Of a stretch of 64,000 nt of DNA, positions 2,595 to 13,790 are shown piece by piece; position 1 is the stretch's first letter; every line of letters starts with the position of its first letter. The stretch is taken from positions 1-64,000 of IMG/VR virus record IMGVR_UViG_3300027770_001980; one strand, written 5' to 3'. The translations under genes and the position numbers were made by a program. The notes under the pieces are model-generated. The model worked only from the letters and a program-made list of their open reading frames with translations. It made no database searches and had not been told where the DNA came from.

Positions 2595-3967
2595 ATAAAT
2601 TAATCATATTCGACCTCGACGGGGTTTTAATAGACAGCAGAGAATTGCATTACTTCAGTCTTAATGAAGCATTGCATAGTATAGATCCAAAATATGTAAT
2701 AGGTAGGGATGAGCATCTATCTACATATGATGGACTTAACACTACAAGAAAGTTAAAGTTACTTTCTGAAACTAAATCATTACCTATTGAATGCCATGAT
2801 ATGGTATGGCAACGAAAACAATTGGCCACATTCGATTTGATTAAAAAATTTGATATTGATTACAAGTTAGTAGATATTTTTTCAAAACTTAAAGCATCTG
2901 GGTATATGATTGCAGTGGCCAGTAACAGTATAAGAGAAACTGTTAAACTTAGCCTATTAAGGATAGGGGTGATGGAATACGTTGATTATTATATTAGTAA
3001 TCAAGATGTTGTCCATGCTAAACCGTATCCTGAAATGTATTGGCAATGTATGACAGCGTTGAAAGTATTACCCAAAAACACACTCATCATAGAAGATAGT
3101 CACATCGGTAGACAAGCAGCCATGGATAGTGGTGCGGTATTATTGGCTGTAGAAAATCCAAATGATGTAACATGGGGGAAAATTAATTCAAGATTACAAC
3201 GTATGAATTCGCAAATGACATCAAATACTATCCCTTGGAAAGATAGCCGATTAAATGTTTTGGTGCCTATGGCAGGTGCAGGCAGTAGATTTGCCCAACA
3301 AGGATATACCTTTCCAAAACCATTGATTGAAGTTAATGGTAAGCCTATGATACAAGTGGTGGTGGAAAATTTAAACATAGAGGCTCATTACATTTTTATT
3401 GTACAGCAAGAGCACTATGAGAAGTACAATCTTAAATATCTTCTCAATCTCATTGCTCCAGGATGTGACATTGTACAGGTTAATGGAATCACTGAAGGTG
3501 CGGCATGTTCAACATTATTGGCCAAAGATTATATCAATAATGATGCTCCTTTGGTAATGGCCAATAGTGATCAATATGTAGAATGGAATAGTAACGAGTG
3601 CATGTATGCATTTTCAGCAGATGATATTGACGGCGGCATCTTAACTTTTGAAGCAAGCCATCCTAAATGGAGTTATGCGAAAATAGGTCAGGATGGATTT
3701 GTAAATGAAGTAGCCGAAAAGAAAGTTATCAGCAATGAAGCTACGGTGGGGGTCTATTATTGGAAGCACGGCAGTGATTATGTTAAATATGCCGAAGACA
3801 TGATTGCTAAGAATATTCGTGTAAATAATGAATTCTATGTTTGCCCTGTATTCAATCAAGCGATCAAAGACCATAAGAAGATCAAAGTGAAACGCATTAA
3901 TCGAATGTGGGGTATAGGTACCCCGGAAGATTTAAACAATTTTTTACAAAATTATAAAGGAAAATAA
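2585..3967 (+). CDS. HAD phosphatase / sugar-nucleotidyltransferase fusion
   Basis: N-terminal DLDGVL...KP...IEDS; C-terminal PMAGAGSRF...PKPLI...GTPEDL. Confidence 0.85.
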   Translation: MAMNKLIIFDLDGVLIDSRELHYFSLNEALHSIDPKYVIGRDEHLSTYDGLNTTRKLKLLSETKSLPIECHDMVWQRKQLATFDLIKKFDIDYKLVDIFSKLKASGYMIAVASNSIRETVKLSLLRIGVMEYVDYYISNQDVVHAKPYPEMYWQCMTALKVLPKNTLIIEDSHIGRQAAMDSGAVLLAVENPNDVTWGKINSRLQRMNSQMTSNTIPWKDSRLNVLVPMAGAGSRFAQQGYTFPKPLIEVNGKPMIQVVVENLNIEAHYIFIVQQEHYEKYNLKYLLNLIAPGCDIVQVNGITEGAACSTLLAKDYINNDAPLVMANSDQYVEWNSNECMYAFSADDIDGGILTFEASHPKWSYAKIGQDGFVNEVAEKKVISNEATVGVYYWKHGSDYVKYAEDMIAKNIRVNNEFYVCPVFNQAIKDHKKIKVKRINRMWGIGTPEDLNNFLQNYKGK

Positions 3968-3968: not shown

Positions 3969-4559
3969 ATGAAAACAATTATCGAGGTAGGAGCAAATAA
4001 TGGACATGATACACTTCAATTTTTAAATGACACAAATAACAATGTTTTTTGCTTTGAACCTACTGTAGAATTACAAGTAGTATTACATAACAAATATAAA
4101 CATTTTAAAAACTTTCATCTAATCTCAGCTGCGGTTGATATCAATAACGGATTCCAATGGTTTAATATCGCCGGACAAGCAGATTGGGGATGTTCATCAC
4201 TATATGAATTTTCTGAAAATTTAGAACAGACATGGCCGGGCAGGCCCGATTTTAAAACTACAGATCAATATAAAGTAATGACCATGCGTCTGGATACTTT
4301 TTTTGAAAATTATAATATTACAGAAGTAGATTATTTGTGGATAGACGCTCAGGGAAATGATTTTAAAGTTTTGCAGAGTCTCGGAGATAAGATAAACATG
4401 GTTAAGAATGGTAAATGTGAAGCTGCCTATGAGACTGTTTTATATAAAAATACCAATAATAATGCTCATGATATTAAGGCATGGTTAGAGGAACGGAATT
4501 TTGAATGTCATTTCGAAAGTATATCACATGAGGCCGATGTGCATTTTAGAAGAAAATGA
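3969..4559 (+). CDS. FkbM-family methyltransferase
   Basis: EVGANNG, FEP, RLDTF, IDAQG motifs. Confidence 0.8.
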   Translation: MKTIIEVGANNGHDTLQFLNDTNNNVFCFEPTVELQVVLHNKYKHFKNFHLISAAVDINNGFQWFNIAGQADWGCSSLYEFSENLEQTWPGRPDFKTTDQYKVMTMRLDTFFENYNITEVDYLWIDAQGNDFKVLQSLGDKINMVKNGKCEAAYETVLYKNTNNNAHDIKAWLEERNFECHFESISHEADVHFRRK

Positions 4560-5011
4560 AACTAATCGCACATAGGGGACTAACCTACGGTCCAGATGTT
4601 AATCTCGAAAATCGACCTGAACAAATCGAACTGGCATTAAGTCAAGGGTTCGATTGTGAAATTGACCTCTGGGTAGTTAATTCAGAGTTCTATCTGGGGC
4701 ATGATAGACCAGACTACCCAGTTGATAAAAAATTCTTAGACAAATTTGGACTATGGATCCATGCCAAGAACCTACCAGCATTGCGGTGGTTAACTGATAC
4801 CAGCCTGTGCTACTTCTGGCATGAGAATGACGAATTCACATTGACCAGTAATAAACTTATATGGACTTATCCTGGTAAGGAATTAACTCAACGTAGCATA
4901 GCAGTATTGCCAGAGTGGCATGATCCTGAGTTCAACAACTTGCCAACTAACTGTTATGGAATTTGTAGTGACTTTGTTGTGAAAATACAACAAAAACAGG
5001 TTGACATATAG
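4556..5011 (+). CDS. GDPD/PLC-like phosphodiesterase domain protein
   Basis: IAHRG, EN, CEIDLW, LGHD, WIHAKN. Confidence 0.7.
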   Translation: MKLIAHRGLTYGPDVNLENRPEQIELALSQGFDCEIDLWVVNSEFYLGHDRPDYPVDKKFLDKFGLWIHAKNLPALRWLTDTSLCYFWHENDEFTLTSNKLIWTYPGKELTQRSIAVLPEWHDPEFNNLPTNCYGICSDFVVKIQQKQVDI

Positions 5012-5029
5012 AACATATCCACATACAAT
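5001..5029 (+). promoter_or_regulatory. sigma70 promoter P1 of tRNA array
   Basis: TTGACA-17-TACAAT. Confidence 0.7.
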
Positions 5030-5095
5030 TAGTCACATACACAGCAGCAAAGTCAAAAATATTTTTGTTTTTTTGTTCAAAAATGCAAAAACAGG

Positions 5096-5124
5096 TTGAC
5101 AGCGATGCTAAATAAATGTATAAT
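5096..5124 (+). promoter_or_regulatory. sigma70 promoter P2 of tRNA array
   Basis: Perfect TTGACA-17-TATAAT. Confidence 0.85.
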
Positions 5125-5182
5125 TAACACATACGCAGCAATAATGCAGTGTATGAAACTTAAAGGTAAATTGGAAAGTAAA

Positions 5183-5329
5183 ATGAACAACGTATCGTAT
5201 ATTAGACAACATTGCTCAATAGCCAAACAGGCAGGCTTTATGCCCTCTGCTTGGTTAGCGATTAATAGTCTGTCATATGATCGCACACCAGAGGGGAATA
5301 CCCCGGGGTCCCAGGAGACCAGAGTGTAA
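5183..5329 (+). CDS. putative attenuator leader peptide (48 aa, all 20 amino acids)
   Basis: MNNVSYIRQHCSIAKQAGFMPSAWLAINSLSYDRTPEGNTPGSQETRV*; lies between promoter and terminator. ORF track starts it upstream at a TTG inside the -35 box. Confidence 0.7.
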   Translation: MNNVSYIRQHCSIAKQAGFMPSAWLAINSLSYDRTPEGNTPGSQETRV

Positions 5330-5358
5330 TAAAATACACGCTAACTCCAAAGGACCCC
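5305..5358 (+). promoter_or_regulatory. putative antiterminator hairpin
   Basis: GGGGTCC (5305-11)/GGACCCC (5352-58), GGAG/CTCC and GTGTA/TACAC; sequesters the 5' arm of the terminator. Confidence 0.7.
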
Positions 5359-5382
5359 AGGACTAAACACCCTGGGGTTTTT
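5354..5382 (+). terminator. intrinsic terminator (attenuator)
   Basis: ACCCCAGG-actaaacac-CCTGGGGT followed by a T-tract. Confidence 0.8.
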
Positions 5383-5494
5383 GCTTTTCGAGTGTGAAGA
5401 TACAGGTAACGAGGACCTGACAGCGCACTATAAACATGCTGTAAACGGGCGGTGACGAGGATGGCTTATCTTCTTGTAGATAAAAAAATTCGTC

Positions 5495-5587
5495 ATATTA
5501 AAGCATATACTTGCCTGACTGTAAACGTCGTGGTAAACTACTAGAGAAAGGGGTTCGAATCCCCGGGACTGGTATGTGCTTTAATAT
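5495..5587 (+). repeat. inverted-repeat-bracketed cassette B1
   Basis: ATATTAAAGCATATAC / GTATGTGCTTTAATAT (16 bp); cargo has CTGTAAA and the T-arm GGGGTTCGAATCCCC. Confidence 0.75.
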
Positions 5588-5649
5588 ACACACTCGTTCT
5601 GAGTACATAGTACAAAGAGGCAGAAAGATAAACTGCTAGAGTGTGTTTT

Positions 5650-5735
5650 GGAGACGTGGCAGAGAGGTTGATTGCACCAGACTGTAAATCTGGCCCGTAA
5701 AAAGCACGATGGTTCGAATCCATCCGTCTCCACCA
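5650..5735 (+). tRNA. tRNA-Tyr(GTA)
   Basis: Cloverleaf, CCAGA-ctGTAaa-TCTGG, encoded CCA. Confidence 0.92.
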
Positions 5736-5741
5736 TATTTC

Positions 5742-5817
5742 GGGGGATTGGTATACTTGGCTAACACACCTGGTTTGCAACCAGGAGCAAACGGTTCGAA
5801 TCCGTTATCCTCCACCA
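5742..5817 (+). tRNA. tRNA-Ala(TGC)
   Basis: CCTGG-ttTGCaa-CCAGG, CCA. Confidence 0.9.
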
Positions 5818-5822
5818 AGTTT

Positions 5823-5896
5823 GCTCTGTTAGTATAATGGTATTACACCTGTTTTGTAATCAGGTTACGGCAGTTCGATTCTGTCACGGAGCACCA
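5823..5896 (+). tRNA. tRNA-Thr(TGT)
   Basis: ttTGTaa loop, TTCGATT, CCA. Confidence 0.88.
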
Positions 5897-5902
5897 AGTT
5901 AC

Positions 5903-5977
5903 GGCCTCATCATATAGTGGTTATTATACCGGCCTGTCTAGTCGGATATCGGAGTTCGATTCTCCGTGGGGTCGCCA
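5903..5977 (+). tRNA. tRNA-Asp(GTC)
   Basis: CCGGC-ctGTCta-GTCGG, CCA. Confidence 0.9.
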
Positions 5978-5982
5978 GTTTT

Positions 5983-6040
5983 AGGATAGCAACAGCAAAC
6001 TCAAAAATTTCAATGTTTATGAAACCAAAATGCTATCCTG
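5983..6040 (+). ncRNA. CAGCAA-handle RNA E1
   Basis: AGGATAGCA/TGCTATCCT helix, ACAGCAAA, hairpin TTTCA-atGTTta-TGAAA. Confidence 0.7.
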
Positions 6041-6049
6041 TTTTATTAT

Positions 6050-6124
6050 ACTCCGGTCGTCTAGTGGCTAGGACGCCAGCCTTTCAAGTTGGAGAAGCGG
6101 GATCGAAACCCGTTCGGAGTACCA
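6050..6124 (+). tRNA. tRNA-Glu(TTC)
   Basis: CCAGC-ctTTCaa-GTTGG; variant T-loop ATCGAAA. Confidence 0.88.
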
Positions 6125-6132
6125 AGTTTTAT

Positions 6133-6210
6133 CTGTGTGTGAGAAAGTCTGGTTAATCTACTCGCCTTGGAAGTGAGAAATCGTAGGTTCAAATCCTACC
6201 ACACAGACCA
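6133..6210 (+). tRNA. tRNA-Pro(TGG)
   Basis: CTCGC-ctTGGaa-GTGAG, CCA. Confidence 0.88.
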
Positions 6211-6215
6211 TATAT

Positions 6216-6290
6216 GCCGTTGTAGTCCTCTGGGAGGGCACTGGATTGTCTATCCAATTAAGGCGGGTTCGATTCCCGTCGACGGCGCCA
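6216..6290 (+). tRNA. tRNA-Asp(GTC), copy 2
   Basis: TGGA-ttGTCta-TCCA, CCA. Confidence 0.88.
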
Positions 6291-6297
6291 AGTTTAT

Positions 6298-6373
6298 GTC
6301 CCATTCATCTAGAGGCCTAGGATAGTACCCTTTCACGGTATTCACAGCGGTTCGAATCCGCTATGGGACGCCA
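6298..6373 (+). tRNA. tRNA-Glu(TTC), copy 2
   Basis: GTACC-ctTTCac-GGTAT, CCA. Confidence 0.9.
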
Positions 6374-6380
6374 AGTTTAT

Positions 6381-6451
6381 GCGCTGGATTGACATTGCGA
6401 GTTGGATTTGAAGCCAAACGCAGACAGGTTTGATTCCTGTCAGGTGCACCA
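6381..6451 (+). pseudogene. degenerate tRNA-like gene, anticodon unclear
   Basis: ACCA end, T-arm CAGG-TTTGATT-CCTG, 8-nt loop ATTTGAAG, poor D-arm. Confidence 0.55.
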
Positions 6452-6458
6452 AGTTTAT

Positions 6459-6535
6459 GCGTGGTTAGCTCAGTTTGGTAGAGCATCGGGTTGCCAACTC
6501 GAAGGTCGCAGGTTCGAACCCTGTACCCCGCACCA
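6459..6535 (+). tRNA. tRNA-Gly(GCC)
   Basis: TCGGG-ttGCCaa-CTCGA, CCA. Confidence 0.9.
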
Positions 6536-6544
6536 AAAATTTAT

Positions 6545-6622
6545 GTCTAGGTGGCGGAGTGGCCCAACGCGACAGTCTGCAAAACTGTAACACCGTCGGT
6601 TCAAATCCGACCCTAGATTCCA
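6545..6622 (+). tRNA. tRNA-Cys(GCA)
   Basis: ACAGT-ctGCAaa-ACTGT, TCCA. Confidence 0.9.
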
Positions 6623-6626
6623 ATAT

Positions 6627-6703
6627 GCGTGGTTAGTGTTTAACGGCGAGCACGGTTGGCTTCCACCCAGCAAGAAGGAGTTCGAATCTCCTACCCCGCA
6701 CCA
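6627..6703 (+). tRNA. tRNA-Gly(TCC)
   Basis: GTTGG-ctTCCac-CCAGC, CCA. Confidence 0.88.
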
Positions 6704-6707
6704 AGTT

Positions 6708-6902
6708 TTGTAAGTGTCAGCAAGAGAAAGACTCGCTAGGAAGATTCTTCGAAGGTCGACCCAGTGTAAAAGTAGATCCGGTTCGAATCCGGCTTGGCTA
6801 CGGAGCGTCTATGTCGAGTATCCCGAGTGACTTACCTCCTCCCGTCCGGACTTGCATGAATCGGGTGAATGGTTGCGATTACAGAGGTGCAACTACTTAC
6901 AA
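6708..6902 (+). ncRNA. large CAGCAA-handle RNA E2 (~195 nt)
   Basis: TTGTAAGTG/TACTTACAA closing helix, TCAGCAAG, internal T-arm CCGG-TTCGAAT-CCGG. Confidence 0.6.
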
Positions 6903-6906
6903 ATTC

Positions 6907-7069
6907 AATAAGTAAGAATCAAGTGGAAAGCAAGAGCCACAAAGTAAATAGTAGACTATCATGCTACCGCGGTAGTCTTTGCAGTGTATACTGCGTCGGT
7001 AAAGTGTAACAGCGGAATCGAGAAACACTGGGGTAAGAGTCCCAACGTAGCGGTAAGCAGAAATTTATT
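6907..7069 (+). ncRNA. unassigned structured RNA
   Basis: AATAAGT/ATTTATT closure; AGACTATC/GGTAGTCT, GCAGT/ACTGC and GGG-GTAAGAGT-CCC hairpins. Confidence 0.45.
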
Positions 7070-7144
7070 CCGCAGTAGCTCAGTCGGTAGAGTAGTTGAC
7101 TGTTAATCAATTGGTCCCTGGTTCGAGCCCAGGCTGTGGAGCCA
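7069..7144 (+). tRNA. tRNA-Asn(GTT)
   Basis: GTTGA-ctGTTaa-TCAAT, GCCA. Confidence 0.92.
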
Positions 7145-7150
7145 AGTTTA

Positions 7151-7211
7151 AGGATGCTAACCGCAAATTTATACTCTGAACTTTTAATTCAACCAGTAAA
7201 AATGCATCCTG
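7151..7211 (+). ncRNA. CAGCAA-handle RNA E3
   Basis: AGGATGC/GCATCCT helix, ACCGCAAA, hairpin TGAA-ctTTTaa-TTCA. Confidence 0.7.
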
Positions 7212-7222
7212 TTTTATTTTGT

Positions 7223-7298
7223 TGGGGTGTCGCCTAGTGGCCTAAGGCAACGGTCTTTGAAATCGTCATCATGAGTTCGAATCTCATCTCCCCTGCCA
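7223..7298 (+). tRNA. tRNA-Gln(TTG)
   Basis: ACGGT-ctTTGaa-ATCGT, GCCA; acceptor stem has mismatches. Confidence 0.82.
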
Positions 7299-7317
7299 AA
7301 CATATTAGGAGAATGCA

Positions 7318-7446
7318 ATGGCTCACAAGCAACAAGGTATTCTAACAAAGAGTCCCCAATGGTGGAAGCACCTCAAGGACTGGAAACGTGTGTTCTGGAA
7401 ATCAGAACGCCAAGCACAGAAACGTAACATTAAACAAGGAGAATGA
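7318..7446 (+). CDS. small Trp/Lys-rich protein (42 aa)
   Basis: AGGAG RBS; MAHKQQGILTKSPQWWKHLKDWKRVFWKSERQAQKRNIKQGE*. Confidence 0.6.
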   Translation: MAHKQQGILTKSPQWWKHLKDWKRVFWKSERQAQKRNIKQGE

Positions 7447-7537
7447 CATGAAACGTTCAGGTAAACGATAGTGTCAATCTTAGATCCCGTATATGGTCTA
7501 GGGTTGGCACATTAAAGACAATTTAATATGCAATCAA

Positions 7538-7611
7538 CCCTCACAAACATTAAGGTGATGTAACCGGCTCTTAACCGGTAAAACACGGATCGTTACCGTG
7601 GTGTGGGACCA
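7538..7611 (+). tRNA. tRNA-Lys(CTT)
   Basis: ACCGG-ctCTTaa-CCGGT; variant T-loop ATCGTTA. Confidence 0.8.
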
Positions 7612-7617
7612 ATATAT

Positions 7618-7691
7618 GGGATCGTAACTTAAAAGTAAAGTATCGGACTTTTAATCCGACTAAGAAGGGGCAGTACCTTCCGGTCTCACCA
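7618..7691 (+). tRNA. tRNA-Lys(TTT)
   Basis: TCGGA-ctTTTaa-TCCGA; variant T-loop GGCAGTA. Confidence 0.82.
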
Positions 7692-7770
7692 TATAAAAAC
7701 ACATTGTCCTAGGCTGTGACCTAGTCCATCAGAAGTCCTTTGAGACAGAAACAATGTGTTTCTATATGGT
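7689..7770 (+). repeat. inverted-repeat-bracketed cassette B2
   Basis: CCATATAAAAACACATTGT / ACAATGTGTTCTCTATATGG; cargo hairpin CTAGG-CTGTGA-CCTAG. Confidence 0.75.
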
Positions 7771-7910
7771 AAAGAAGAAGCCGACATGGAAAGGTAGTGC
7801 AAAGGTATACAGTTGGTCTGGTTCGAAACAGAGTAAACTGATTGTATAATGAGCGTAGCACAACCCGCATCGCACGGGTAGTTAGTGGGTTCGATTCCCA
7901 TCTTTGTTAT
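7767..7910 (+). ncRNA. unassigned structured RNA with two T-loop mimics
   Basis: TCTG-GTTCGAAA-CAGA, ACCCG-catcgca-CGGGT, GTGGG-TTCGATT-CCCAT. Confidence 0.45.
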
Positions 7911-8025
7911 CATACATGAACACATTCAACGGTAAACAGGATACCTGGCAACTGGACGCAGGGGCTATCCCGAAGATGTAGGGCACTACCACCGTAAAGT
8001 CAGGAAATGAGTGTGTTCCTATATG
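7911..8025 (+). repeat. inverted-repeat-bracketed cassette B3
   Basis: CATACATGAACACATTCA / TGAGTGTGTTCCTATATG; inner ACGGT/ACCGT helix. Confidence 0.7.
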
Positions 8026-8100
8026 GTGTCTTTAGTGTAGTGGCCTGCACCCTGCTCTGTGAAAGCGGTAGTACCGGATCGATACCGGTAAGGCACCCCA
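8025..8100 (+). tRNA. tRNA-His(GTG)
   Basis: G-1 and C73, CTGCT-ctGTGaa-AGCGG. Confidence 0.88.
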
Positions 8101-8143
8101 ATATTTATTGTAGAGCATAAATACATTTATAAGGTGCTCTGCA

Positions 8144-8527
8144 ATGTTAAACTCAATATGTAAAAATTGTTCAAAAGAATTTATTAAAGGTCGAAATACA
8201 ACAGGGACATACTGTTCACTACCTTGCACTTTTGAATCTCAAAAAAAAGAAAGAAGAGAAAATTTCTTAGAAGGAAAAATGGTTAACCGTGGATTAATGA
8301 AACAACATATGGTTGATATTCACAGTTGGCAATGTATGTGTTGTAAAAACACTGAATGGTTAGGAGTGCCAATTCCGTTGGAGTTGGATCACATTGATGG
8401 TAATGCAGGAGACAATCGACCTGAAAATTTGCGATTGCTATGTCCAAACTGCCATGCACAGACTCCAACACATAAAGCAAAGAATAAAGGCAATGGCCGC
8501 GGGAGTCGCGGATTGCCCTGGTATTAA
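8144..8527 (+). CDS. HNH endonuclease
   Basis: LELDHIDGNAGDNRPENLRLLCPNCHAQT with Cys pairs. Confidence 0.85.
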   Translation: MLNSICKNCSKEFIKGRNTTGTYCSLPCTFESQKKERRENFLEGKMVNRGLMKQHMVDIHSWQCMCCKNTEWLGVPIPLELDHIDGNAGDNRPENLRLLCPNCHAQTPTHKAKNKGNGRGSRGLPWY

Positions 8528-8529
8528 TT

Positions 8530-8603
8530 CCTCTTGTAGTTAAATGGTATAACGGCCTCTTGATAAGTGGTTATTACAAGTTCGATTCTTGTCGAGAGGA
8601 CCA
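8530..8603 (+). tRNA. tRNA-Ile(GAT)
   Basis: ttGATaa loop, ACCA. Confidence 0.85.
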
Positions 8604-8610
8604 AGTTTAC

Positions 8611-8685
8611 GCCTGGTTAGTTCAGCGGAAGAACGTCTGCCCGATTAGCGGAATGTTGTAGGTTCGACTCCTACACCGGGTACCA
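8611..8685 (+). tRNA. tRNA-Ile(GAT)-like with variant loop
   Basis: TCTGC-ccGATta-GCGGA (C33, U37); otherwise a normal cloverleaf. Confidence 0.7.
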
Positions 8686-8692
8686 AATCAAT

Positions 8693-8767
8693 GCGCCCGT
8701 AGTATAATGGATAATACACTAGGCTACGAACTTAGGAATGGTGGTTCGATTCCATCCGGGCGCACCA
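8693..8767 (+). tRNA. tRNA-Arg(ACG)
   Basis: CTAGG-ctACGaa-CTTAG. Confidence 0.9.
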
Positions 8768-8775
8768 ATAGTTAA

Positions 8776-8865
8776 GGAAGCGTGGCAGAGCCCGGCTTAT
8801 TGCAGCAGTCTTGAAAACTGCCGACCCGAAAGGGTCCGTGAGTTCGAATCTCACCGCTTCCGCCA
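8776..8865 (+). tRNA. tRNA-Ser(TGA)
   Basis: GCAGT-ctTGAaa-ACTGC, long variable arm. Confidence 0.92.
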
Positions 8866-8882
8866 ATACAATAAATAAGTCT

Positions 8883-9626
8883 ATGCGAATACATGAACTT
8901 ATTGTAGAAACTACTGAGGAAGATCGTGCTATCATTAGCCTTGCTGATGTTATCTATAAGGATCTACAGCAATATGCTGATACAGAATTAGACTACGATG
9001 AAACAGGTGTGATGCACATTGGACGCATCGGTGATCTGTTTGATACTCCGATTCCCGGACTTGATCGCGTGAGATTAGAAATATCTTCAGATGAGTCCAT
9101 AGTGGATCTGGCACGTAGACTTCACGGTAAGGCTACACCGTCAGATAGTCATTTTGGACAATGGGATCCTATGGAGAAGGCGATATCTTTAAATGCTGAT
9201 TACTTGAGCTCTAATCGTATGCGTAGTGTCATAGCACATGAATTAAGACATGCCATGGACGATATGAAATCGTTGAATAGGGCTAACCAAAGTACACGAT
9301 ATCGTACAGCAAGGAAGCCCGAGCATCAAGCAGATAAAGATGGTGCTTATCAAGCACAACCTGCAGAAATCAATGCTAGGTTTATCGAAGCGTTGAATGT
9401 GTTAGTGCCCGTCATACCAAAGTTGGCAAATTTAGAACCTGCTGCATTTAGAACAAAGATGACAGCATATATAAACAAAGCATTTGAACTTAAAGACATC
9501 GCAGATTATTATCCAGAAAAGACAGCAAGTCCACACTATAAGAGATTGCTGCAACGAGCATGGGCTTTTATTGAAAAAGAGCTGGCTCACATACGATCAC
9601 AAACAGTTGACACAGCGGCGGAATAA
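8883..9626 (+). CDS. putative Zn metallopeptidase-like protein
   Basis: HExxH (AHELRH) plus downstream EINA; start moved to MRIHEL because the track start lies inside the tRNA. Confidence 0.55.
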   Translation: MRIHELIVETTEEDRAIISLADVIYKDLQQYADTELDYDETGVMHIGRIGDLFDTPIPGLDRVRLEISSDESIVDLARRLHGKATPSDSHFGQWDPMEKAISLNADYLSSNRMRSVIAHELRHAMDDMKSLNRANQSTRYRTARKPEHQADKDGAYQAQPAEINARFIEALNVLVPVIPKLANLEPAAFRTKMTAYINKAFELKDIADYYPEKTASPHYKRLLQRAWAFIEKELAHIRSQTVDTAAE

Positions 9627-9635
9627 GTATATAAT
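9607..9635 (+). promoter_or_regulatory. sigma70 promoter (internal to array)
   Basis: TTGACA-17-TATAAT. Confidence 0.8.
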
Positions 9636-9641
9636 ATACTT

Positions 9642-9750
9642 GCGACCGTGAGTGGAACATGGCAGACCTCCGGACCGGGGATTCTCGGCGAGGGATGGGG
9701 CGAAGTCTTAGACACAGCCTTTGTAGGTTCAAACCCTACCGGTCGTACCA
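9642..9750 (+). ncRNA. Leu-type tRNA-like RNA with expanded central domain (109 nt)
   Basis: GCGACCG/CGGTCGT acceptor + ACCA, Leu-like D-loop, T-arm; no canonical anticodon arm. Confidence 0.6.
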
Positions 9751-9762
9751 GTTAAGAATTAA

Positions 9763-9851
9763 GGAATGGTCCCATAATGGTATTGGAGCAGATTGCTAAT
9801 CTGTCGGTCGTTTAATACGGCTTCCGAGTTCGAGTCTCGGTCATTCCGCCA
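9763..9851 (+). tRNA. tRNA-Ser(GCT)
   Basis: GCAGA-ttGCTaa-TCTGT, long variable arm. Confidence 0.9.
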
Positions 9852-9872
9852 AGTTGATAAAAGAAGAATTAT

Positions 9873-10670
9873 ATGATTTTAGATTGTGTTACATTTTTTA
9901 ATGAGTTAGAATTATTAGAGGGTAGATTAGAATACCTGTATGATACCGTAGACTATTTTATCATAGTTGAAAGTGATACAACTCATAGTGGTCACCCTAA
10001 ACCTTTAAACTATTTGCCTAACATACAGAGATATAAAAAATATCTGGACAAGATAATTTATTTTCCGTATCCGGCAGAAATTAAAGATCTAAATATCGAT
10101 CAAACTCTTGATAAATTTGATTACGATTCCGCACATTGGAAAATAGAGAAAAGACAAAGAAGTCATATTCTTAATGCGATAAAATTTTTCAAGGATGACG
10201 ATATAGTATTGATCAGTGATGTTGATGAGATTCCTTCTAAATCTGCTATCGAGATAGCATCCGAGCAGTTAGGAAAATCAGCAGCAGCATTTTCATTATC
10301 ACAGGATTTTTTCTTTTATAATTTTGCTCAGAGGCAAAGTTTTCCGTGGAAAGGTACTGTTGTTTCTACAAACAAATTTGTTCAACAACAAGGTCCGCAG
10401 TGGCTTCGTGATATGCGTTGGGATATTCCAACAATATTTCAAGGTGGATATCATTTGAGCTACTGGGGTGATCCAGAACGTATCGCAACTAAGATACAGA
10501 ACTTTGCACATCAGGAACTCAACAAAGAAACCTTTACAGATACCGAACGTATAAAAGAAAGAATTAAATCAGGTAACGATCCGTTTGATCGTCAACCATT
10601 GATTCCTGTAGAACCGGAATCAATTCCAAAAGACATTTATGACATATTCAACAAATATGGCAGTAGTTAA
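9873..10670 (+). CDS. GT17-family (GnT-III-like) glycosyltransferase
   Basis: FFNELELLEGRL, VESDTTHSG, SDVDEIP, GYHLSY, KIQNFAHQE. Confidence 0.8.
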   Translation: MILDCVTFFNELELLEGRLEYLYDTVDYFIIVESDTTHSGHPKPLNYLPNIQRYKKYLDKIIYFPYPAEIKDLNIDQTLDKFDYDSAHWKIEKRQRSHILNAIKFFKDDDIVLISDVDEIPSKSAIEIASEQLGKSAAAFSLSQDFFFYNFAQRQSFPWKGTVVSTNKFVQQQGPQWLRDMRWDIPTIFQGGYHLSYWGDPERIATKIQNFAHQELNKETFTDTERIKERIKSGNDPFDRQPLIPVEPESIPKDIYDIFNKYGSS

Positions 10671-10674
10671 TTTG

Positions 10675-10763
10675 TATCTCTGGTGTAATGGTATTGGAGC
10701 GGATTGCTAATCCGTCGAGTTGCGAAAGCAGCTTTCTGAGTTCGAGTCTCAGTCATTCCGCCA
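10675..10763 (+). pseudogene. chimeric tRNA-Ser(GCT) with foreign 5' end
   Basis: D-loop to CCA resembles the 9763 Ser; 5' TATCTCT cannot pair with 3' TCATTCC. Confidence 0.7.
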
Positions 10764-10770
10764 AATAAAT

Positions 10771-10847
10771 GAGTCAGTAGTTCCAATTGGCAGAACGTTG
10801 GTCTCCAAAACCAAATGTTGTAGGTTCAAATCCTACCTGGCTCGCCA
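10771..10847 (+). tRNA. tRNA-Trp(CCA)
   Basis: TTGGT-ctCCAaa-ACCAA. Confidence 0.92.
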
Positions 10848-10871
10848 AACAAAGATAGTAAATAATAGTAT

Positions 10872-10945
10872 GCGGGTATGATGTAAAGGTAACCTGAAAC
10901 CTTGCCAAGGTTTATTTGAGAGTTCGATTCTCTCTACCCGCTCCA
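10872..10945 (+). tRNA. tRNA-Gly(GCC), copy 2
   Basis: AAACC-ttGCCaa-GGTTT. Confidence 0.9.
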
Positions 10946-10949
10946 AATA

Positions 10950-11045
10950 GGCCGGACCTGTATCCATATTCCGGCTCCGCTGACGCGAAAACAGGATGGG
11001 CTGCGCTCACGGGGTTTGATTGTTTCCCGACACAACAATAACAAT
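10950..11045 (+). ncRNA. unassigned pseudoknot-forming RNA
   Basis: GCCGGA/TCCGGC stem whose loop CCTGT can pair with ACAGG (10991-95). Confidence 0.4.
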
Positions 11046-11059
11046 CACCAAACATATGG

Positions 11060-11104
11060 CCTCACCCTCTAGCAACATAGTTCTACGGTGAGGTTTTCTT
11101 TTTT
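11060..11104 (+). terminator. terminator-like hairpin inside array
   Basis: CCTCACC/GGTGAGG with a long loop, followed by a T-rich tract. Confidence 0.45.
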
Positions 11105-11165
11105 AGGATAGCAACAGCAAACATTTAAAAACTTTTCTTGAACAAAAGCCAAAAATGCTATCCTG
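11105..11165 (+). ncRNA. CAGCAA-handle RNA E4
   Basis: AGGATAGCA/TGCTATCCT helix, ACAGCAAA, hairpin CTTTT-ctTGAac-AAAAG. Confidence 0.7.
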
Positions 11166-11174
11166 TTTTATTAT

Positions 11175-11250
11175 GCCATAGTAGCTCCAATGGTAGAGCA
11201 GCGGACTGAAAATTCGTGTGTTGCTGGTTCGAATCCAGCCTATGGTACCA
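11175..11250 (+). tRNA. tRNA-Phe(GAA)
   Basis: GCGGA-ctGAAaa-TTCGT. Confidence 0.92.
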
Positions 11251-11258
11251 ATTTATAA

Positions 11259-11266
11259 TATAAATA
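11259..11266 (+). promoter_or_regulatory. T4-like late promoter TATAAATA
   Basis: Exact octamer just upstream of the ATG; it also occurs at 13684, 49547, 52268 (+) and 27083, 44861, 51988 (-). Confidence 0.6.
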
Positions 11267-11271
11267 TTTTT

Positions 11272-11991
11272 ATGAAAATTGCAATATTACTATCCGGACA
11301 ACCAAGATTTACTCAAGAGTTTCAATTATTTTTAGATAATTTAGTAGGTTATGATCAAGCAGATTGGTTTGTTTACATGACCAATAATAATCACGATCCT
11401 TTTAAAGATAATCGCATTAAAATTCCAGAGACCTGGATAAATTATGAAATAGATTGGGCCAGAGAGACTATAACAAGAAATCTTCCTCCTAACAATTTTC
11501 TCAGACGTTTCGAAATATCGAATGTACACGAACAAATTTTTCCAACTCTTCGAGAAGAACATCTATCTGGTAATCAAGCTATTTTCAAAATGCACTATAA
11601 TATATTTAAAACAAATCAATTAAGAGAAGAATATGAAACCTCTTATAATTTTAAATACGATGCAATTGTTAGAGCCCGCCCCGATGTTGGACTTAATCAG
11701 ATAATAGATCTTCGAAAATTTGATTTGTCGACCAGGGGAGTCTTTATGCCTTGCCCTTTTTATGGACACCCAGGGAGAGAGTCTAATGATTTGATTGGAT
11801 TTGGTAATTCGGAGGTCATGTCTATTTACAGTAATGCCTTACATCATTTCAAAGAATATAGTGATGCTGGAGAAATAGTTTGCCCTGAAACACTATTATC
11901 ACGGCACTTGATTACAAATAATGTATCACGTATAAAATCTGATTTTAGTCACATTTTTCGAACTCTGCCTTTAGATCCTAAATGGTTTTGA
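11272..11991 (+). CDS. glycosyltransferase-like protein, paralog 1
   Basis: MKIAILLSGQPRF...KYDAIVRARPD...NDLIGFG; start reassigned out of tRNA-Phe. Confidence 0.6.
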   Translation: MKIAILLSGQPRFTQEFQLFLDNLVGYDQADWFVYMTNNNHDPFKDNRIKIPETWINYEIDWARETITRNLPPNNFLRRFEISNVHEQIFPTLREEHLSGNQAIFKMHYNIFKTNQLREEYETSYNFKYDAIVRARPDVGLNQIIDLRKFDLSTRGVFMPCPFYGHPGRESNDLIGFGNSEVMSIYSNALHHFKEYSDAGEIVCPETLLSRHLITNNVSRIKSDFSHIFRTLPLDPKWF

Positions 11992-12010
11992 GTGTCTGAA
12001 CTAATTACAT

Positions 12011-12097
12011 GGAAGATAGAAGTGCCGGGCACTAAGCAACTTGGAAAGTTGTTCCACTCTGAAAGGGGTGACAGTTCGACTCTGTTATCTTCCTCCA
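12011..12097 (+). tRNA. tRNA-Ser(GGA)
   Basis: GCAAC-ttGGAaa-GTTGT, long variable arm, atypical D-arm. Confidence 0.8.
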
Positions 12098-12117
12098 ACA
12101 CACTAAAGGAGCATAAC

Positions 12118-12180
12118 ATGTTAGTAATAGGATTATTAGTAATCATGGGTATGCTCTATTTGATTATTAGAAAGTTATAA
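12118..12180 (+). CDS. 20-aa hydrophobic peptide
   Basis: AAGGAG RBS; MLVIGLLVIMGMLYLIIRKL*. Confidence 0.5.
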   Translation: MLVIGLLVIMGMLYLIIRKL

Positions 12181-12181
12181 T

Positions 12182-12257
12182 GGTAGAGTAGCATAGCGGC
12201 TAATGCACCAGCTTCATACGCTGTCGATCGTGGGTTCGAGTCCCACCTCTACTACCA
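12182..12257 (+). tRNA. tRNA-Met(CAT)
   Basis: CAGC-ttCATac-GCTG. Confidence 0.85.
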
Positions 12258-12262
12258 ATCAA

Positions 12263-12382
12263 TGTCGTTGTCGTCTAATGGTAGGACGCTTATAAAAGGT
12301 TATCCTGTTAAGGATACAGTCAGCACAATCAAATTCCATGTCAAGGAAGAGATCTGGGTTCGAATCCCAGCTGCGACCCCCA
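12263..12382 (+). ncRNA. tRNA-like RNA with branched anticodon domain (~120 nt)
   Basis: Acceptor, D-arm, T-arm and CCA present; the centre holds TATCC-TGTTAA-GGATA and TTCC-atGTCaa-GGAA hairpins. Confidence 0.65.
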
Positions 12383-12388
12383 GTTTAT

Positions 12389-12464
12389 GTACATGAGCCC
12401 GAAGATTGAGGGTACCGTTAATTGAGACGGCGAAAGGCGATTGAGATGATACCCATGTACGCCA
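12389..12464 (+). ncRNA. 76-nt tRNA-like RNA lacking a TPsiC loop
   Basis: Perfect GTACATG/CATGTAC + GCCA; GCCC/GGGT and CCGTT/GACGG arms. Confidence 0.55.
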
Positions 12465-12466
12465 AG

Positions 12467-12615
12467 TTTCGAGATAGACGTAGAGATCGAGTCCCCTGTA
12501 CGCTAGTGCCCTATTTCTTGAGCATGACACACCAGTAGCAGTATCGGGTCAAGCAAAACTCTCTCATACGAGACAAACCAATGAGTCCTTGAGAAAGATA
12601 GTTGGAGGCTCGAAA
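12467..12615 (+). ncRNA. unassigned structured RNA (~150 nt)
   Basis: TTTCGAG/CTCGAAA closure; CTTGA/TCAAG and CTCAT/ATGAG helices. Confidence 0.45.
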
Positions 12616-12623
12616 ACCTATAT

Positions 12624-12709
12624 GCTCTGGTGCAGGGAATTGGAAGACCGGCAACGTTGAGAACGTTGTGACCTAACAGGTGTGGGTTCGAGTCCCACCC
12701 AGAGCACCA
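12624..12709 (+). tRNA. tRNA-Leu(GAG)
   Basis: CAACG-ttGAGaa-CGTTG. Confidence 0.88.
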
Positions 12710-12713
12710 ATTT

Positions 12714-12787
12714 AGTTCCTTAGTTTAATGGCAGAACACTACCTCGACACGGTGACAATGAAAGTTCGATTCTTTCAGGAACTACCA
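12714..12787 (+). tRNA. tRNA-Val(GAC)
   Basis: TACC-tcGACac-GGTG (C33 variant). Confidence 0.8.
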
Positions 12788-12877
12788 TATATAAAAACAT
12801 ATTAGGCCCTCGGTCGTAGACTTGAGTTGCGGGTATAGTGCCTTCCAAGCCGTGGACTCGAATGTGTTTTTATATAT
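12787..12877 (+). repeat. inverted-repeat-bracketed cassette B4
   Basis: ATATATAAAAACATATT / AATGTGTTTTTATATAT (17 bp); cargo has tRNA-Gly-like GCGGGTATAGT and GC-ctTCCaa-GC. Confidence 0.75.
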
Positions 12878-12905
12878 GAAAGTTCGATTCTTTCAGGAAC
12901 TACCA
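12876..12905 (+). repeat. 30-bp direct repeat of the tRNA-Val 3' end
   Basis: ATGAAAGTTCGATTCTTTCAGGAACTACCA, identical to 12758-12787. Confidence 0.9.
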
Positions 12906-12906
12906 A

Positions 12907-12981
12907 CTCTCTATAGTTCAATGGATAGAACACATTCCTCCTAAGAATGGGATGCAGGTTCGATTCCTGCTGGAGAGACCA
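12907..12981 (+). tRNA. tRNA-Arg(CCT)
   Basis: CATTC-ctCCTaa-GAATG. Confidence 0.92.
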
Positions 12982-12993
12982 AATAAATATTAT

Positions 12994-13070
12994 GCCCCGT
13001 TACGCTAATTGGTAGTGCGGATTCTCTCAAAAGGAGTTGGCTGTCTGTTCGAATCAGACACGGGGTACCA
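12994..13070 (+). tRNA. tRNA-Leu(CAA), short variable arm
   Basis: ATTCT-ctCAAaa-GGAGT; 77 nt. Confidence 0.78.
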
Positions 13071-13075
13071 CTTAT

Positions 13076-13150
13076 CGGTCTTTAGTGAAATGGATATCAT
13101 CTTTGTCTTCGAAACAAAAGTTGTGGGTTCGATCCCTGCAAGACCGGCCA
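13076..13150 (+). tRNA. tRNA-Arg(TCG)
   Basis: TTTGT-ctTCGaa-ACAAA. Confidence 0.9.
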
Positions 13151-13154
13151 ATCT

Positions 13155-13228
13155 GCTCCTATAGGTAAATGGTATACCAGCACTTTGGTAAAGTGCAATT
13201 ACAAGTTCGATTCTTGTTAGGAGCACCA
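13155..13228 (+). tRNA. tRNA-Thr(GGT)
   Basis: GCACT-ttGGTaa-AGTGC. Confidence 0.9.
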
Positions 13229-13236
13229 AAAAAAAC

Positions 13237-13265
13237 TTGACACACCGACAGAAATACAGTATAAT
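13237..13265 (+). promoter_or_regulatory. sigma70 promoter (internal to array)
   Basis: TTGACA-17-TATAAT. Confidence 0.8.
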
Positions 13266-13330
13266 TACTACATAGACAGCAAACGATAGAGTTAGTTGTT
13301 GTGTGTTCATTAACAATACAAGTTGGTTTT

Positions 13331-13414
13331 GCGGGTGTGGTGGAATGGTATACACAGCAGACTTAAAATCTGCCGCTGAAAAGCATGCCGGTTCGAGTCC
13401 GGCCACCCGCACCA
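13331..13414 (+). tRNA. tRNA-Leu(TAA)
   Basis: GCAGA-ctTAAaa-TCTGC. Confidence 0.92.
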
Positions 13415-13518
13415 TATTGAAACACATTGTGGAGAGCACTGTGTAGATTGAGAAGGTTTGATTCCGACTCACTACATCACTCGGTATCCTGCGGCCGCAA
13501 CAGTGTGCTTCAATATGG
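13412..13518 (+). repeat. inverted-repeat-bracketed cassette B5
   Basis: CCATATTGAAACACATTGT / ACAGTGTGCTTCAATATGG; cargo TGTAG/CTACA helix with GGTTTGATTCC T-loop mimic. Confidence 0.75.
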
Positions 13519-13522
13519 TGTT

Positions 13523-13641
13523 ATATTAAAATATACTTTTCGTCTCCAGTAGCCCAAACCCGGGGGAATCGCATATTGAGAATGTGCATAGCACAACGGT
13601 ACAGCAAGCATAAGACACTTGTTGGAAGTATGTTTTAATAT
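13523..13641 (+). repeat. inverted-repeat-bracketed cassette B6
   Basis: ATATTAAAATATACTT / AAGTATGTTTTAATAT; cargo GCATATT/AATGTGC hairpin. Confidence 0.72.
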
Positions 13642-13647
13642 GATTCC

Positions 13648-13680
13648 CTGGCGTTCGTATAATGGATAATACAGGGGATT
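13648..13680 (+). pseudogene. 5' half of a split tRNA-Arg(TCT)
   Basis: CTGGCGT acceptor strand, D-arm, GGGGA-TT; its partner half is at 14447-14488. Confidence 0.8.
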
Positions 13681-13698
13681 TAGTATAAATAGATATAT

Positions 13699-13775
13699 GC
13701 GACTGTAGCTCAGTTGGATAGAGTACCCGGCTTCTACCCGGATTGTCGGGGGTTCGAATCCCTCCAGTCGCACCA
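13699..13775 (+). tRNA. tRNA-Arg(TCT), replacement copy inside the insertion
   Basis: CCGG-ctTCTac-CCGG, full cloverleaf. Confidence 0.88.
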
Positions 13776-13790
13776 TTTAGTAGAAAATGT

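Follow-up and report, generated by a model that had tools for sequence, protein, structure and literature searches.

A leader peptide sampling all 20 amino acids and its inferred role in gating a phage tRNA gene cluster

At the head of a phage tRNA gene cluster, a 48-codon open reading frame (ORF) that contains each of the 20 amino acids sits in front of an intrinsic transcription terminator. Over 100 related phage contigs keep this arrangement while the peptide sequence drifts, which points to a switch that lets the tRNA genes be transcribed when decoding of any amino acid is slow. The element was found in a window of 64,000 nucleotides (positions 1 to 64,000 of IMG/VR record IMGVR_UViG_3300027770_001980), to which all coordinates below refer. 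It is known only from metagenomic viral contigs, as a DNA search of positions 4900-5700 against 50,697 GenBank phage records found no match.

Anatomy of the leader and the downstream tRNA array

The features of the region, all on the + strand, are as follows.

5001-5029 (+), upstream tandem sigma-70-type promoter (TTGACA, 17 nt, TACAAT; 11/12), which shares the motif AAAAACAGGTTGACA with the next promoter.
5096-5124 (+), consensus sigma-70-type promoter (TTGACA 5096-5101, 17-nt spacer, TATAAT 5119-5124; 12/12), with an inferred transcription start near 5131.
5173-5178 (+), purine-rich Shine-Dalgarno-like GGAAAG, 4 nt before the conserved ATG.
5183-5329 (+), leader ORF of 48 codons plus TAA (5327-5329), with all 20 amino acids present by codon 37 (Glu, 5291-5293).
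5252-5290 (+), hairpin inside the ORF (TGGT..GCGAT / ATCGC..ACCA), a candidate transcription-pause or timing hairpin by inference.
5305-5334 (+), 5' half of the antiterminator hairpin: stem 1 GGGGTCC 5305-5311, stem 2 GGAG 5314-5317, stem 3 5321-5328 and the apical loop 5329-5334; the stop codon spans the end of stem 3 and the loop.
5335-5358 (+), 3' half of the antiterminator hairpin: stem 3 5335-5342, stem 2 CTCC 5345-5348, stem 1 GGACCCC 5352-5358.
5355-5388 (+), intrinsic terminator: stem CCCCAGG 5355-5361 with CCTGGGG 5371-5377, 9-nt loop 5362-5370, T-run 5378-5382 and 5385-5388; it shares 5355-5358 with antiterminator stem 1 and is the only copy in the window.
5389-5649 (+), conserved structured RNA of unknown class ("element X") between the terminator and the first tRNA.
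5650-8865 (+), first block of the tRNA array: 19 tRNA genes predicted by ARAGORN, from Tyr-GTA to Ser-TGA, plus one more found by Rfam at 7618-7688.

The sequence-only reading of this region had described the promoter, the ORF, the terminator, and the pairing of GGGGTCC with the terminator's 5' arm, and its observation is confirmed at every one of these points. As it had claimed, the first 37 codons use 32 distinct codons, including all four Ala codons plus ATA and AGA, and about 72 uniform random draws are expected to collect all 20 amino acids (probability of collecting all 20 in 37 draws, 1.7%). One detail is wrong: ATA and AGA had been called rare, but AGA is 37% of Arg codons and ATA is 29% of Ile codons in these phages. 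The claim that about 42 tRNA genes are controlled also overstates the reach of the element. Although no promoter-like site of 9/12 or better lies on the + strand between 5124 and 7443, five more promoters with 11-12/12 matches lie inside the array at 9607, 13237, 14355, 15980, and 18640.

Conservation of composition and of the putative switch

Within the window alone, the all-20 content is about what chance gives. All 20 amino acids within 37 codons occur at 17 separate stop-free places in the six frames and at 2 of 703 ATG starts, so one or two such ORFs per 64 kb are expected. To evaluate whether the feature exceeds chance across relatives, the comparison that had been named beforehand as decisive, we carried out a search anchored only on the terminator and blind to reading frame, which gave at least 121 unique relatives. 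Of these 121, 120 carry exactly one ORF of 38-60 codons ending 24-31 nt before the terminator stem, whereas the other frames carry 1.6-4.2 stops. The ATG at 5183 is the one conserved across relatives, while the in-frame ATGs at 5146 and 5155 are not. The stop is TAA in 115 of 118 leaders, the second codon is A-rich (CAA or AAA in 83 of 118), and the indels between Trp and Asp-Arg are all multiples of three.

We found that, among 118 unique peptides, 92 have all 20 amino acids, 21 have 19, 4 have 18, and 1 has 16. The background rate is 2.6-3.9% for equal-length windows of real proteins, for N-termini, and for other small ORFs, and 0-4% for the other five frames of the same DNA. The excess survives a column shuffle (35 of 44 observed, 11 +/- 2.5 expected, maximum of 21 in 5000 shuffles) and a tree-aware site-profile simulation (P = 0.0007, or P = 0.0013 even with the root forced to all-20). 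It also survives reduction to 24 clusters below 60% identity, of which 11 are mostly all-20 and 22 have at least 19 amino acids (binomial P = 5e-10 and P = 1.4e-14, respectively). Trp, Cys, His, and Tyr occur exactly once in 72-91% of leaders and at different positions in different lineages, for example, PSSW..LSYDR against PSYW..LSNDR in near-identical leaders. Codon diversity is also in excess (mean z = +1.56), but we do not rely on this result because it is confounded by the GC-rich RNA helices, which force rare codons. The phage encodes tRNAs for all 20 amino acids and nearly all codon boxes, so a match between leader codons and the phage's anticodon set cannot discriminate.

The leader could also be an ordinary early gene for a 48-residue micro-protein with its own terminator, in which case the hairpin around the stop would be an mRNA-stabilizing or translational structure and the link to tRNAs a matter of gene order. 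The ORF is conserved and open, and many phage early genes are tiny and of unknown function. However, the peptide sequence is not conserved between clusters, and it matches no Pfam or PHROG family, its only relatives being 10 metagenomic clusters. The conserved blocks in the main cluster instead track RNA helices, as GFMP changes to GCMS, VPMH, and VQMH through compensatory base changes. Because this reading would also leave the all-20 content and the terminator-overlapping covariation unexplained, we consider it unlikely. Even less likely is that the transcript (about 5131 to 5382) is a noncoding small RNA with an incidental ORF. The 260-nt transcript is strongly structured (z = -5.25) and ends at an intrinsic terminator, but the open frame, the ATG, the TAA stop, the indels in multiples of three, and the all-20 content occur in frame 0 only, and no Rfam family matches.

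The antiterminator and terminator helices both covary and share four bases (alignment columns 111-114), so they exclude each other. Antiterminator stem 1 is 99% paired, with double changes at 4 of 7 pairs (0 of 500 shuffles reach this), and in the 118 leaders GGGGTCC:GGACCCC occurs 56 times and AGGGTCC:GGACCCT 43 times. The terminator is 94% paired, with 3 covarying pairs, and has a folding energy of -16.2 kcal/mol in the window. The antiterminator hairpin of the window folds at -24.6 kcal/mol (z = -6.4). In all 66 representative leaders folded, the hairpin encloses the stop codon at -17 to -29 kcal/mol (average of -22.9), and its interior folds far better than shuffles (mean z = -3.26, 66 of 66 below 0). 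RNAalifold on a MAFFT alignment of the whole element recovered only the terminator and a few pairs because the variable parts misalign, and these results therefore come from a trimmed alignment and per-sequence folds. The hairpin at 5252-5290 folds at -11 kcal/mol (z = -2.7), and its GATCG is invariant in the main cluster (in five sequences GATCG occurs a second time). RNAalifold on the ORF body recovered nothing, however, and no clear anti-antiterminator or pause hairpin with a consensus or covariation was found.

An 11-12/12 promoter lies upstream of 107 of 118 leaders, against a typical maximum of 9 in shuffles. A Shine-Dalgarno-like 4-mer is present at -20 to -4 in 77 of 118, and about 25 others have the -10 box only 6-11 nt from the ATG, which looks leaderless. 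All 96 leaders with enough downstream sequence are followed by same-strand tRNA arrays (median of 14 tRNAs within 4 kb). In 26 of these 96, another 11-12/12 promoter lies between the terminator and the first tRNA. Given these promoters and those inside the window's array, the attenuator would control only part of tRNA expression.

A proposed attenuator that samples every amino acid

We propose, with fair confidence, that the element is a ribosome-mediated transcription attenuator of the trp/his type, and the comparative evidence supports this core interpretation of the sequence-only reading. In this view, a ribosome starts on the leader ORF soon after transcription begins at the consensus promoter(s). 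The last seven or eight codons and the stop codon form the 5' half of the three-tier antiterminator, whose basal stem uses four bases of the terminator's 5' arm. If the lead ribosome keeps pace with RNA polymerase and reaches the stop codon, it would hold the antiterminator's 5' strand, and the terminator, about 25-28 nt beyond the stop and out of the ribosome's reach, would fold and end transcription at about 5382. If the ribosome is delayed at any of the first 35-37 codons, or if no ribosome loads at all, the antiterminator would close as soon as its 3' strand is made, and polymerase would read through into element X and the tRNA genes. Because every amino acid is represented upstream of the antiterminator strand, a shortage of any one aminoacyl-tRNA would raise transcription of the array, while ample decoding capacity would shut it down, giving negative feedback on tRNA supply.

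The sequence comparisons establish the parts with their conservation and covariation, selection for the all-20 content, and the link to tRNA arrays. In contrast, translation of the ORF, termination at 5382, the response of read-through to leader translation and aminoacyl-tRNA supply, and the physiological signal are inferred, as are the polarity of the switch, which is deduced from geometry, and read-through as the default state, which is a kinetic argument. At equilibrium, the full 5305-5382 RNA of the window is most stable with the terminator plus the inner antiterminator stems (-29.6 kcal/mol, against -24.6 kcal/mol for the complete antiterminator), and read-through without a ribosome therefore rests on the order of folding. 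The proposed purpose of countering host anticodon nucleases or starvation remains speculation.

The geometry agrees with such a device. [quoted passage not shown] The amino acid set is complete at least 8 nt upstream of the antiterminator strand in 77% of all-20 leaders. With a strict 12-nt ribosome margin, however, only 19 of 118 leaders have all 20 amino acids upstream of the strand and most have 19, as the completing Glu codon lies only 9-11 nt from it.

The polarity could be the opposite, as in pyrBI, where translation promotes read-through and termination efficiency depends on the distance between the leading ribosome and polymerase and on the spacing from stop codon to terminator. Ribosomes at stop codons can repress nearby terminators (PMC4824070), some relatives have only 20-24 nt between the stop and the terminator stem, and the terminator state is the more stable one in the window. 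However, a pyrBI-type device has no antiterminator hairpin and needs none, whereas here a hairpin covaries with the terminator arm and encloses the stop codon, and the median spacing is at or beyond the range of ribosome blockade. We therefore regard this polarity as improbable.

As in the trp and his leaders of enterobacteria, a promoter-proximal short ORF is combined with an intrinsic terminator and an antiterminator helix that shares bases with the terminator's 5' arm, and the stop codon is placed so that a ribosome finishing the leader would mask the antiterminator strand, making ribosome position relative to polymerase the read-out. Those leaders repeat the cognate codon (2 Trp, 7 His) and regulate biosynthesis of that amino acid. 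The leader described here has no run of any codon, carries every amino acid, mostly once or a few times, and precedes tRNA genes in a phage. No trp-like 1:2 protector hairpin was demonstrated, so the untranslated state is predicted to read through rather than super-attenuate. Multivalent attenuators likewise sense more than one amino acid through mixed regulatory codons, but thr (Thr and Ile) and ilvGMEDA (Leu, Val, and Ile) sense two or three related amino acids in clusters, whereas this leader covers all 20 without clustering. In ermCL, bmrB/vmlR-type attenuators, and toiL-topAI, stalling of a ribosome in a short upstream ORF remodels the downstream RNA and turns on downstream genes, with a signal that is not tied to one amino acid. 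Those leaders respond to drugs or to specific nascent-peptide arrest, and none is reported to maintain a complete amino acid set or known to regulate tRNA genes. T-box riboswitches also couple tRNA status to read-through of an intrinsic terminator through an antiterminator, but they bind one uncharged tRNA directly, need no translation, and have a Stem I with a specifier and the T-box motif. No such motifs were found here, and no Rfam match was obtained in this comparison at E <= 10 in 5090-5660 or at E <= 1 in 4500-20000.

One codon per rare amino acid gives far less leverage than the 7 His or 2 Trp codons of classical leaders. The element may therefore report only global translation status, such as ribosome availability, host shut-off, translation inhibitors, or loss of transcription-translation coupling, with the all-20 composition serving some other purpose or being a by-product. 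The evidence for the architecture applies equally to this reading, and any ribosome delay would give the same output, so the RNA alone cannot tell specific from global sensing. However, a global sensor has no need for a complete amino acid set, and yet completeness is actively maintained while the sequence drifts and rare residues move, a property that only translation of each codon type can "see." Although it is the strongest of the alternatives, we consider it unlikely.

We suggest, as somewhat more likely than not, that a widespread clade of large freshwater phages carries a "decoding-speed test," in which slow decoding of any single amino acid is converted into transcription of the phage's own tRNA array. 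Polynucleobacter or other freshwater Betaproteobacteria are the lead for the host. If so, this would be the first attenuator that senses the whole aminoacyl-tRNA pool and the first leader-peptide control of tRNA genes. It would extend leader-peptide attenuation from sensing one amino acid to sensing all of them and would show that tRNA genes can be under translational feedback. It would give the phage tRNA homeostasis and possibly an automatic answer to host tRNA depletion or cleavage, and would offer a compact, portable sensor of decoding capacity made of a promoter, 48 codons, and a switch. Why phages carry large tRNA arrays and how these are expressed are open questions, and no regulatory logic for such arrays was found in the literature that could be searched. 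The element makes directly testable the idea that phage tRNAs are induced on demand, for example, when host tRNAs are mismatched, depleted, or cleaved. Selection acting on composition rather than sequence is unusual, and it can be used to find similar sensors elsewhere.

Element X and the surrounding sequence

Between the terminator and the first tRNA, CGAGTGTG (5389-5396) of element X can pair with CACACTCG (5589-5596), and a second AGTGTG lies at 5640-5645. Element X has at least 85 unique copies and a covarying hairpin with loop AACGAGG. Rfam searches at gathering and permissive thresholds gave nothing for the leader or for element X. We rejected the idea that 5500-5575 is a pseudo-tRNA, as only a T-arm-like 15-mer matches and it lies in the variable domain of element X. 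Upstream, synteny through the neighboring gene (4556-5011) gave 80 loci, of which only two besides the window itself hold part of the leader. The link to that gene is therefore not conserved, and relatives were collected by ORF-anchored and terminator-anchored searches instead. The small downstream ORF of relatives had only weak hits (E = 0.0004-0.008) to PHROG families of unknown function.

Composition of the leader peptide across relatives

The window, which covers the first 64 kb of a 221-kb IMG/VR viral contig, carries 41 ARAGORN tRNA genes between 5650 and 18512, all on the + strand, and Rfam adds a few more. Upstream lie sugar-modification genes, encoding a radical SAM/B12 enzyme, glycosyltransferases, a methyltransferase, and a HAD-nucleotidyltransferase that is 60-64% identical to cyanophage proteins. 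The sequence-only reading had described a promoter, a leader ORF, a terminator and an alternative pairing at the head of this array, and every literal statement of that observation held at its coordinates:

5096-5124, promoter TTGACA-17-TATAAT (12/12 match)
5183-5329, ORF of 48 codons, whose first 37 codons hold all 20 amino acids in 32 distinct codons, with Glu37 as the last newcomer
5305-5311, GGGGTCC, complementary to GGACCCC at 5352-5358
5355-5382, terminator, CCCCAGG / CCTGGGG plus a T-run

Taken alone, the presence of all 20 amino acids is not remarkable. With uniform usage it has a probability of 1.7%, and in this window it occurs at 17 separate stop-free places and at 2 of 703 ATG starts. 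One or two such ORFs would therefore be met by chance in a scan of 64 kb, and the decision had to come from relatives.

The peptide has 10 homologous clusters in the protein database. A protein-pattern scan of viral contigs returned 60 loci, and in nearly all of them the ORF sits just upstream of a tRNA array. To remove any bias toward an open frame, we then searched with the terminator DNA only, which returned at least 120 loci. Pooling all retrieved loci gave 121 unique terminator-anchored stretches, of which 120 have exactly one ORF of 38-60 codons whose stop lies 10-45 nt before the terminator motif. No stretch has a second qualifying frame, and the other five frames of the same DNA carry 1.6-4.2 stops on average. 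The stop is TAA in 115 of 118 leaders, and the second codon is CAA or AAA in 83 of 118. The ATG aligns with position 5183 and not with the upstream in-frame ATGs of the window. Indels between the conserved Trp and Asp-Arg are all multiples of three, leaving 5, 7, 9 or 10 residues between them. Taken together, this pattern points to a translated ORF.

To evaluate if amino acid completeness is under selection, we used the shortest possible start for each leader, which is the conservative choice. Of 118 unique peptides (38-52 residues), 92 contain all 20 amino acids, 21 contain 19, 4 contain 18, and 1 contains 16. In contrast, the background rate of all-20 content is 2.7% for equal-length windows of 1,421 long ORFs from the same loci, 3.9% for the N-termini of those ORFs, 2.6% for 3,192 other small ORFs, and 0-4% for the other frames of the leaders themselves.

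The excess survives tests for shared ancestry. Among the first 44 unique peptides, 35 are all-20, whereas shuffling residues within alignment columns gives 11.0 ± 2.5, with a maximum of 21 in 5000 shuffles. A simulation along the tree with site-specific residue profiles and parsimony-fitted rates gives P = 0.0007, or P = 0.0013 with the root forced to be all-20, and P = 0 at higher rates. Single-linkage clustering at 60% identity leaves 24 clusters, of which 11 are mostly all-20 and 22 have at least 19 amino acids (binomial, P = 5e−10 and 1.4e−14). Several apparent shortfalls come from the shortest-ATG rule; for example, the longer start in one relative, L153, supplies His and Tyr.

While all-20 content is selected for, the sequence is not. 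Peptides of different clusters are barely alignable. Trp, Cys, His and Tyr occur exactly once in 72-91% of leaders, at positions that differ between lineages, and near-identical leaders can move the single Tyr from ..LSYDR.. to ..PSYW... In the main cluster, the conserved block AKQAGFMP..W tracks RNA helices, with GFMP changing to GCMS, VPMH and VQMH through compensatory base changes. No Pfam or PHROG family matches the peptide. The peptide therefore looks like a substrate for decoding and not a product with a function.

The sequence-only reading had also listed ATA and AGA as rare codons. This detail was wrong, given that AGA is 37% of Arg codons and ATA is 29% of Ile codons in these phages, which makes both common. 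The excess of distinct codons is present (32 in the window against 28.5 ± 1.6 expected, P = 0.03; mean family z of +1.56), but it is confounded by the GC-rich helices.

The predicted RNA switch and its geometry

Each relative, folded on its own, gives the same three-tier hairpin. The basal stem (stem 1) is GGGGTCC / GGACCCC, the middle stem is GGAG / CTCC, and the apical stem has variable sequence and holds the stop codon. The mean energy is −22.9 kcal/mol, and the part inside stem 1 folds much better than shuffles (mean z of −3.26, all 66 representatives below zero).

On a trimmed alignment of 43 sequences, stem 1 is 99% paired, with compensatory changes at 4 of 7 pairs (18 cells; 0 of 500 shuffles; slid controls 16-67% paired). 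The terminator is 94% paired, with three covarying pairs. The two helices share four columns, so they cannot coexist. In the set of 118 leaders, GGGGTCC:GGACCCC occurs 56 times and AGGGTCC:GGACCCT 43 times, and there are six G.U combinations and one A-C. Rarer variants change two or three pairs together, for example AGGGCTT:AAGCCCT and GGGTTCC:GGAACCC. A natural deletion variant in relatives L133 and L134 (about 3100-3160) joins ..CCAGGG directly to ACCCTGGGGTTTTT. In this variant the ORF runs on and the terminator hairpin can no longer form, so read-through is probably constitutive.

In the window, the antiterminator is −24.6 kcal/mol (z of −6.4) and the terminator −16.2 kcal/mol. The 5305-5382 RNA is most stable with the terminator plus the inner antiterminator stems (−29.6 kcal/mol). 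As in trp, the antiterminator would win only because it is made first.

[quoted passage not shown] Li et al. measured that a ribosome on a stop codon represses a downstream terminator at short distances and no longer does so beyond about 27 nt (PMC4824070). A ribosome at the leader's stop should therefore hold the 5′ strand of the antiterminator yet leave the terminator free. The amino acid set is complete at least 8 nt upstream of the antiterminator strand in 77% of all-20 leaders, and the completing residue is usually Glu, 9-11 nt upstream. With a stricter 12-nt margin, however, most leaders have 19 amino acids in the sensing zone.

The list of parts is that of a trp/his-type attenuator. The defining difference lies in the regulatory codons, as there is no run of one codon but a complete set. 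The element is not a T-box, since there is no Rfam match, and it is not a pyrBI-type device, since an antiterminator is present and the spacing is too long. Full-text searches found no report of a leader peptide with all 20 amino acids or of attenuation of phage tRNA arrays. The interpretation of the sequence-only reading, an attenuator whose leader samples every amino acid, is thus supported, and this support is comparative; the switching mechanism itself is inferred from sequence and has not been demonstrated. The proposed counter-defense role remains a hypothesis.

Promoters, tRNA arrays and host

A sigma-70 promoter with an 11-12/12 match lies upstream of 107 of 118 leaders, while shuffles typically reach 9 at most. 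In most cases it lies 44-66 nt before the ATG. In about 25 of the 118 leaders (e.g., those of relatives L106, L113-L119, L126-L128, L141, L196 and L207), the −10 box ends only 6-11 nt before the ATG, which suggests that these leaders are probably translated from leaderless or nearly leaderless mRNAs. In L106, L113-L119 and L126-L128, tRNA-Met and tRNA-Leu genes also lie just upstream. All 96 leaders with at least 1.5 kb of downstream sequence are followed by same-strand tRNAs (median of 14 within 4 kb, the first most often Tyr, median distance 443 nt).

In the window, no promoter-like site of 9/12 or better lies on the + strand between 5124 and 7443. At least the first 13 tRNA genes therefore depend on read-through from 5001/5096 or on promoters of another type. 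Besides the leader promoter, six sigma-70-type promoters with 11-12/12 matches lie on the + strand, five of them inside the tRNA array and lacking a leader/terminator unit:

5001-5029, + strand, in tandem 95 nt upstream of the leader promoter, with which it shares the motif AAAAACAGGTTGACA
9607-9635, + strand, consensus promoter inside the array
13237-13265, + strand, consensus promoter inside the array
14355-14383, + strand, consensus promoter inside the array
15980-16008, + strand, consensus promoter inside the array
18640-18668, + strand, 11/12 promoter inside the array

In addition, 26 of 96 relatives have a strong promoter before the first tRNA. The attenuator therefore governs part of the array's expression and cannot control all of the roughly 42 tRNA genes that the sequence-only reading had placed under it.

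GenBank phages lack the element. Among 185,579 species genomes it occurs once (L261, JBBAKF010000113.1, 5595-5925), at the end of a 6.2-kb contig binned as Polynucleobacter sp., with a 12/12 promoter, a 48-residue all-20 leader and the terminator. This sequence is probably phage DNA in the bin, and it gives a clue to the host. Betaproteobacteria-type tmRNA genes beside some relatives point to the same kind of host. In relatives L104 (4850-5312), L121 (1161-1580) and L134 (2207-2682), a GOLLD RNA (201.7 bits) lies inside one relative's tRNA array, and tmRNA genes lie just upstream of the leader in two relatives; the latter match the Betaproteobacteria and permuted models and are called permuted by ARAGORN.

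Elements between the terminator and the tRNAs and within the array

Between the terminator and the tRNAs, most relatives have a 50-60-residue ORF of unknown function, a roughly 210-nt covarying structured RNA, or both. The ORF (L084-L138, about 50-100 nt after the terminator; absent from the window) follows directly after the terminator and has a strong SD and the consensus M..IDY.KLNERIVEQAYEA..LT.EQ..KLIQDKFERA... It has no Pfam hit and only weak hits to PHROG families of unknown function, and it would be the first product of read-through.

The conserved structured RNA ("element X," about 210-260 nt) occupies 5389-5649 in the window and is also found in relatives L084-L136, L142-L215 and others, with at least 85 unique copies. 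Its motifs are AAAGTGTG, a hairpin with loop AACGAGG, GCACTATAAACAT, AACGGGCGG, GGATGG, and GTATTAAAGC with GCTTTAAT closing a variable domain, followed by CACAC(T/A), which can pair with either of two AGTGTG copies. The hairpin stem covaries (15, 8 and 22 double changes), and AGUG pairs with CACU. No Rfam family matches element X.

Several tRNA-like genes of the window (7618-7688, 12264-12378, 14422-14477, 14500-14589 and 7788-7909) are handled differently by the two tools. Rfam finds a tRNA at 7618-7688 that ARAGORN misses, a 115-nt tRNA match at 12264-12378 that may have an insertion or intron, and a partial tRNA at 14422-14477 right after a consensus promoter, while ARAGORN reports a 90-nt "tRNA-Ile (tat)." Protein genes are interspersed in the tRNA array (8144-8527, 9873-10670), namely an HNH endonuclease (a possible homing endonuclease) and a family-17 glycosyltransferase. 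Outside the array, a 685-residue ORF at 60529-62586 has an autotransporter beta-domain (Pfam PF03797, E = 3.6e−13), which is unusual in a phage genome.
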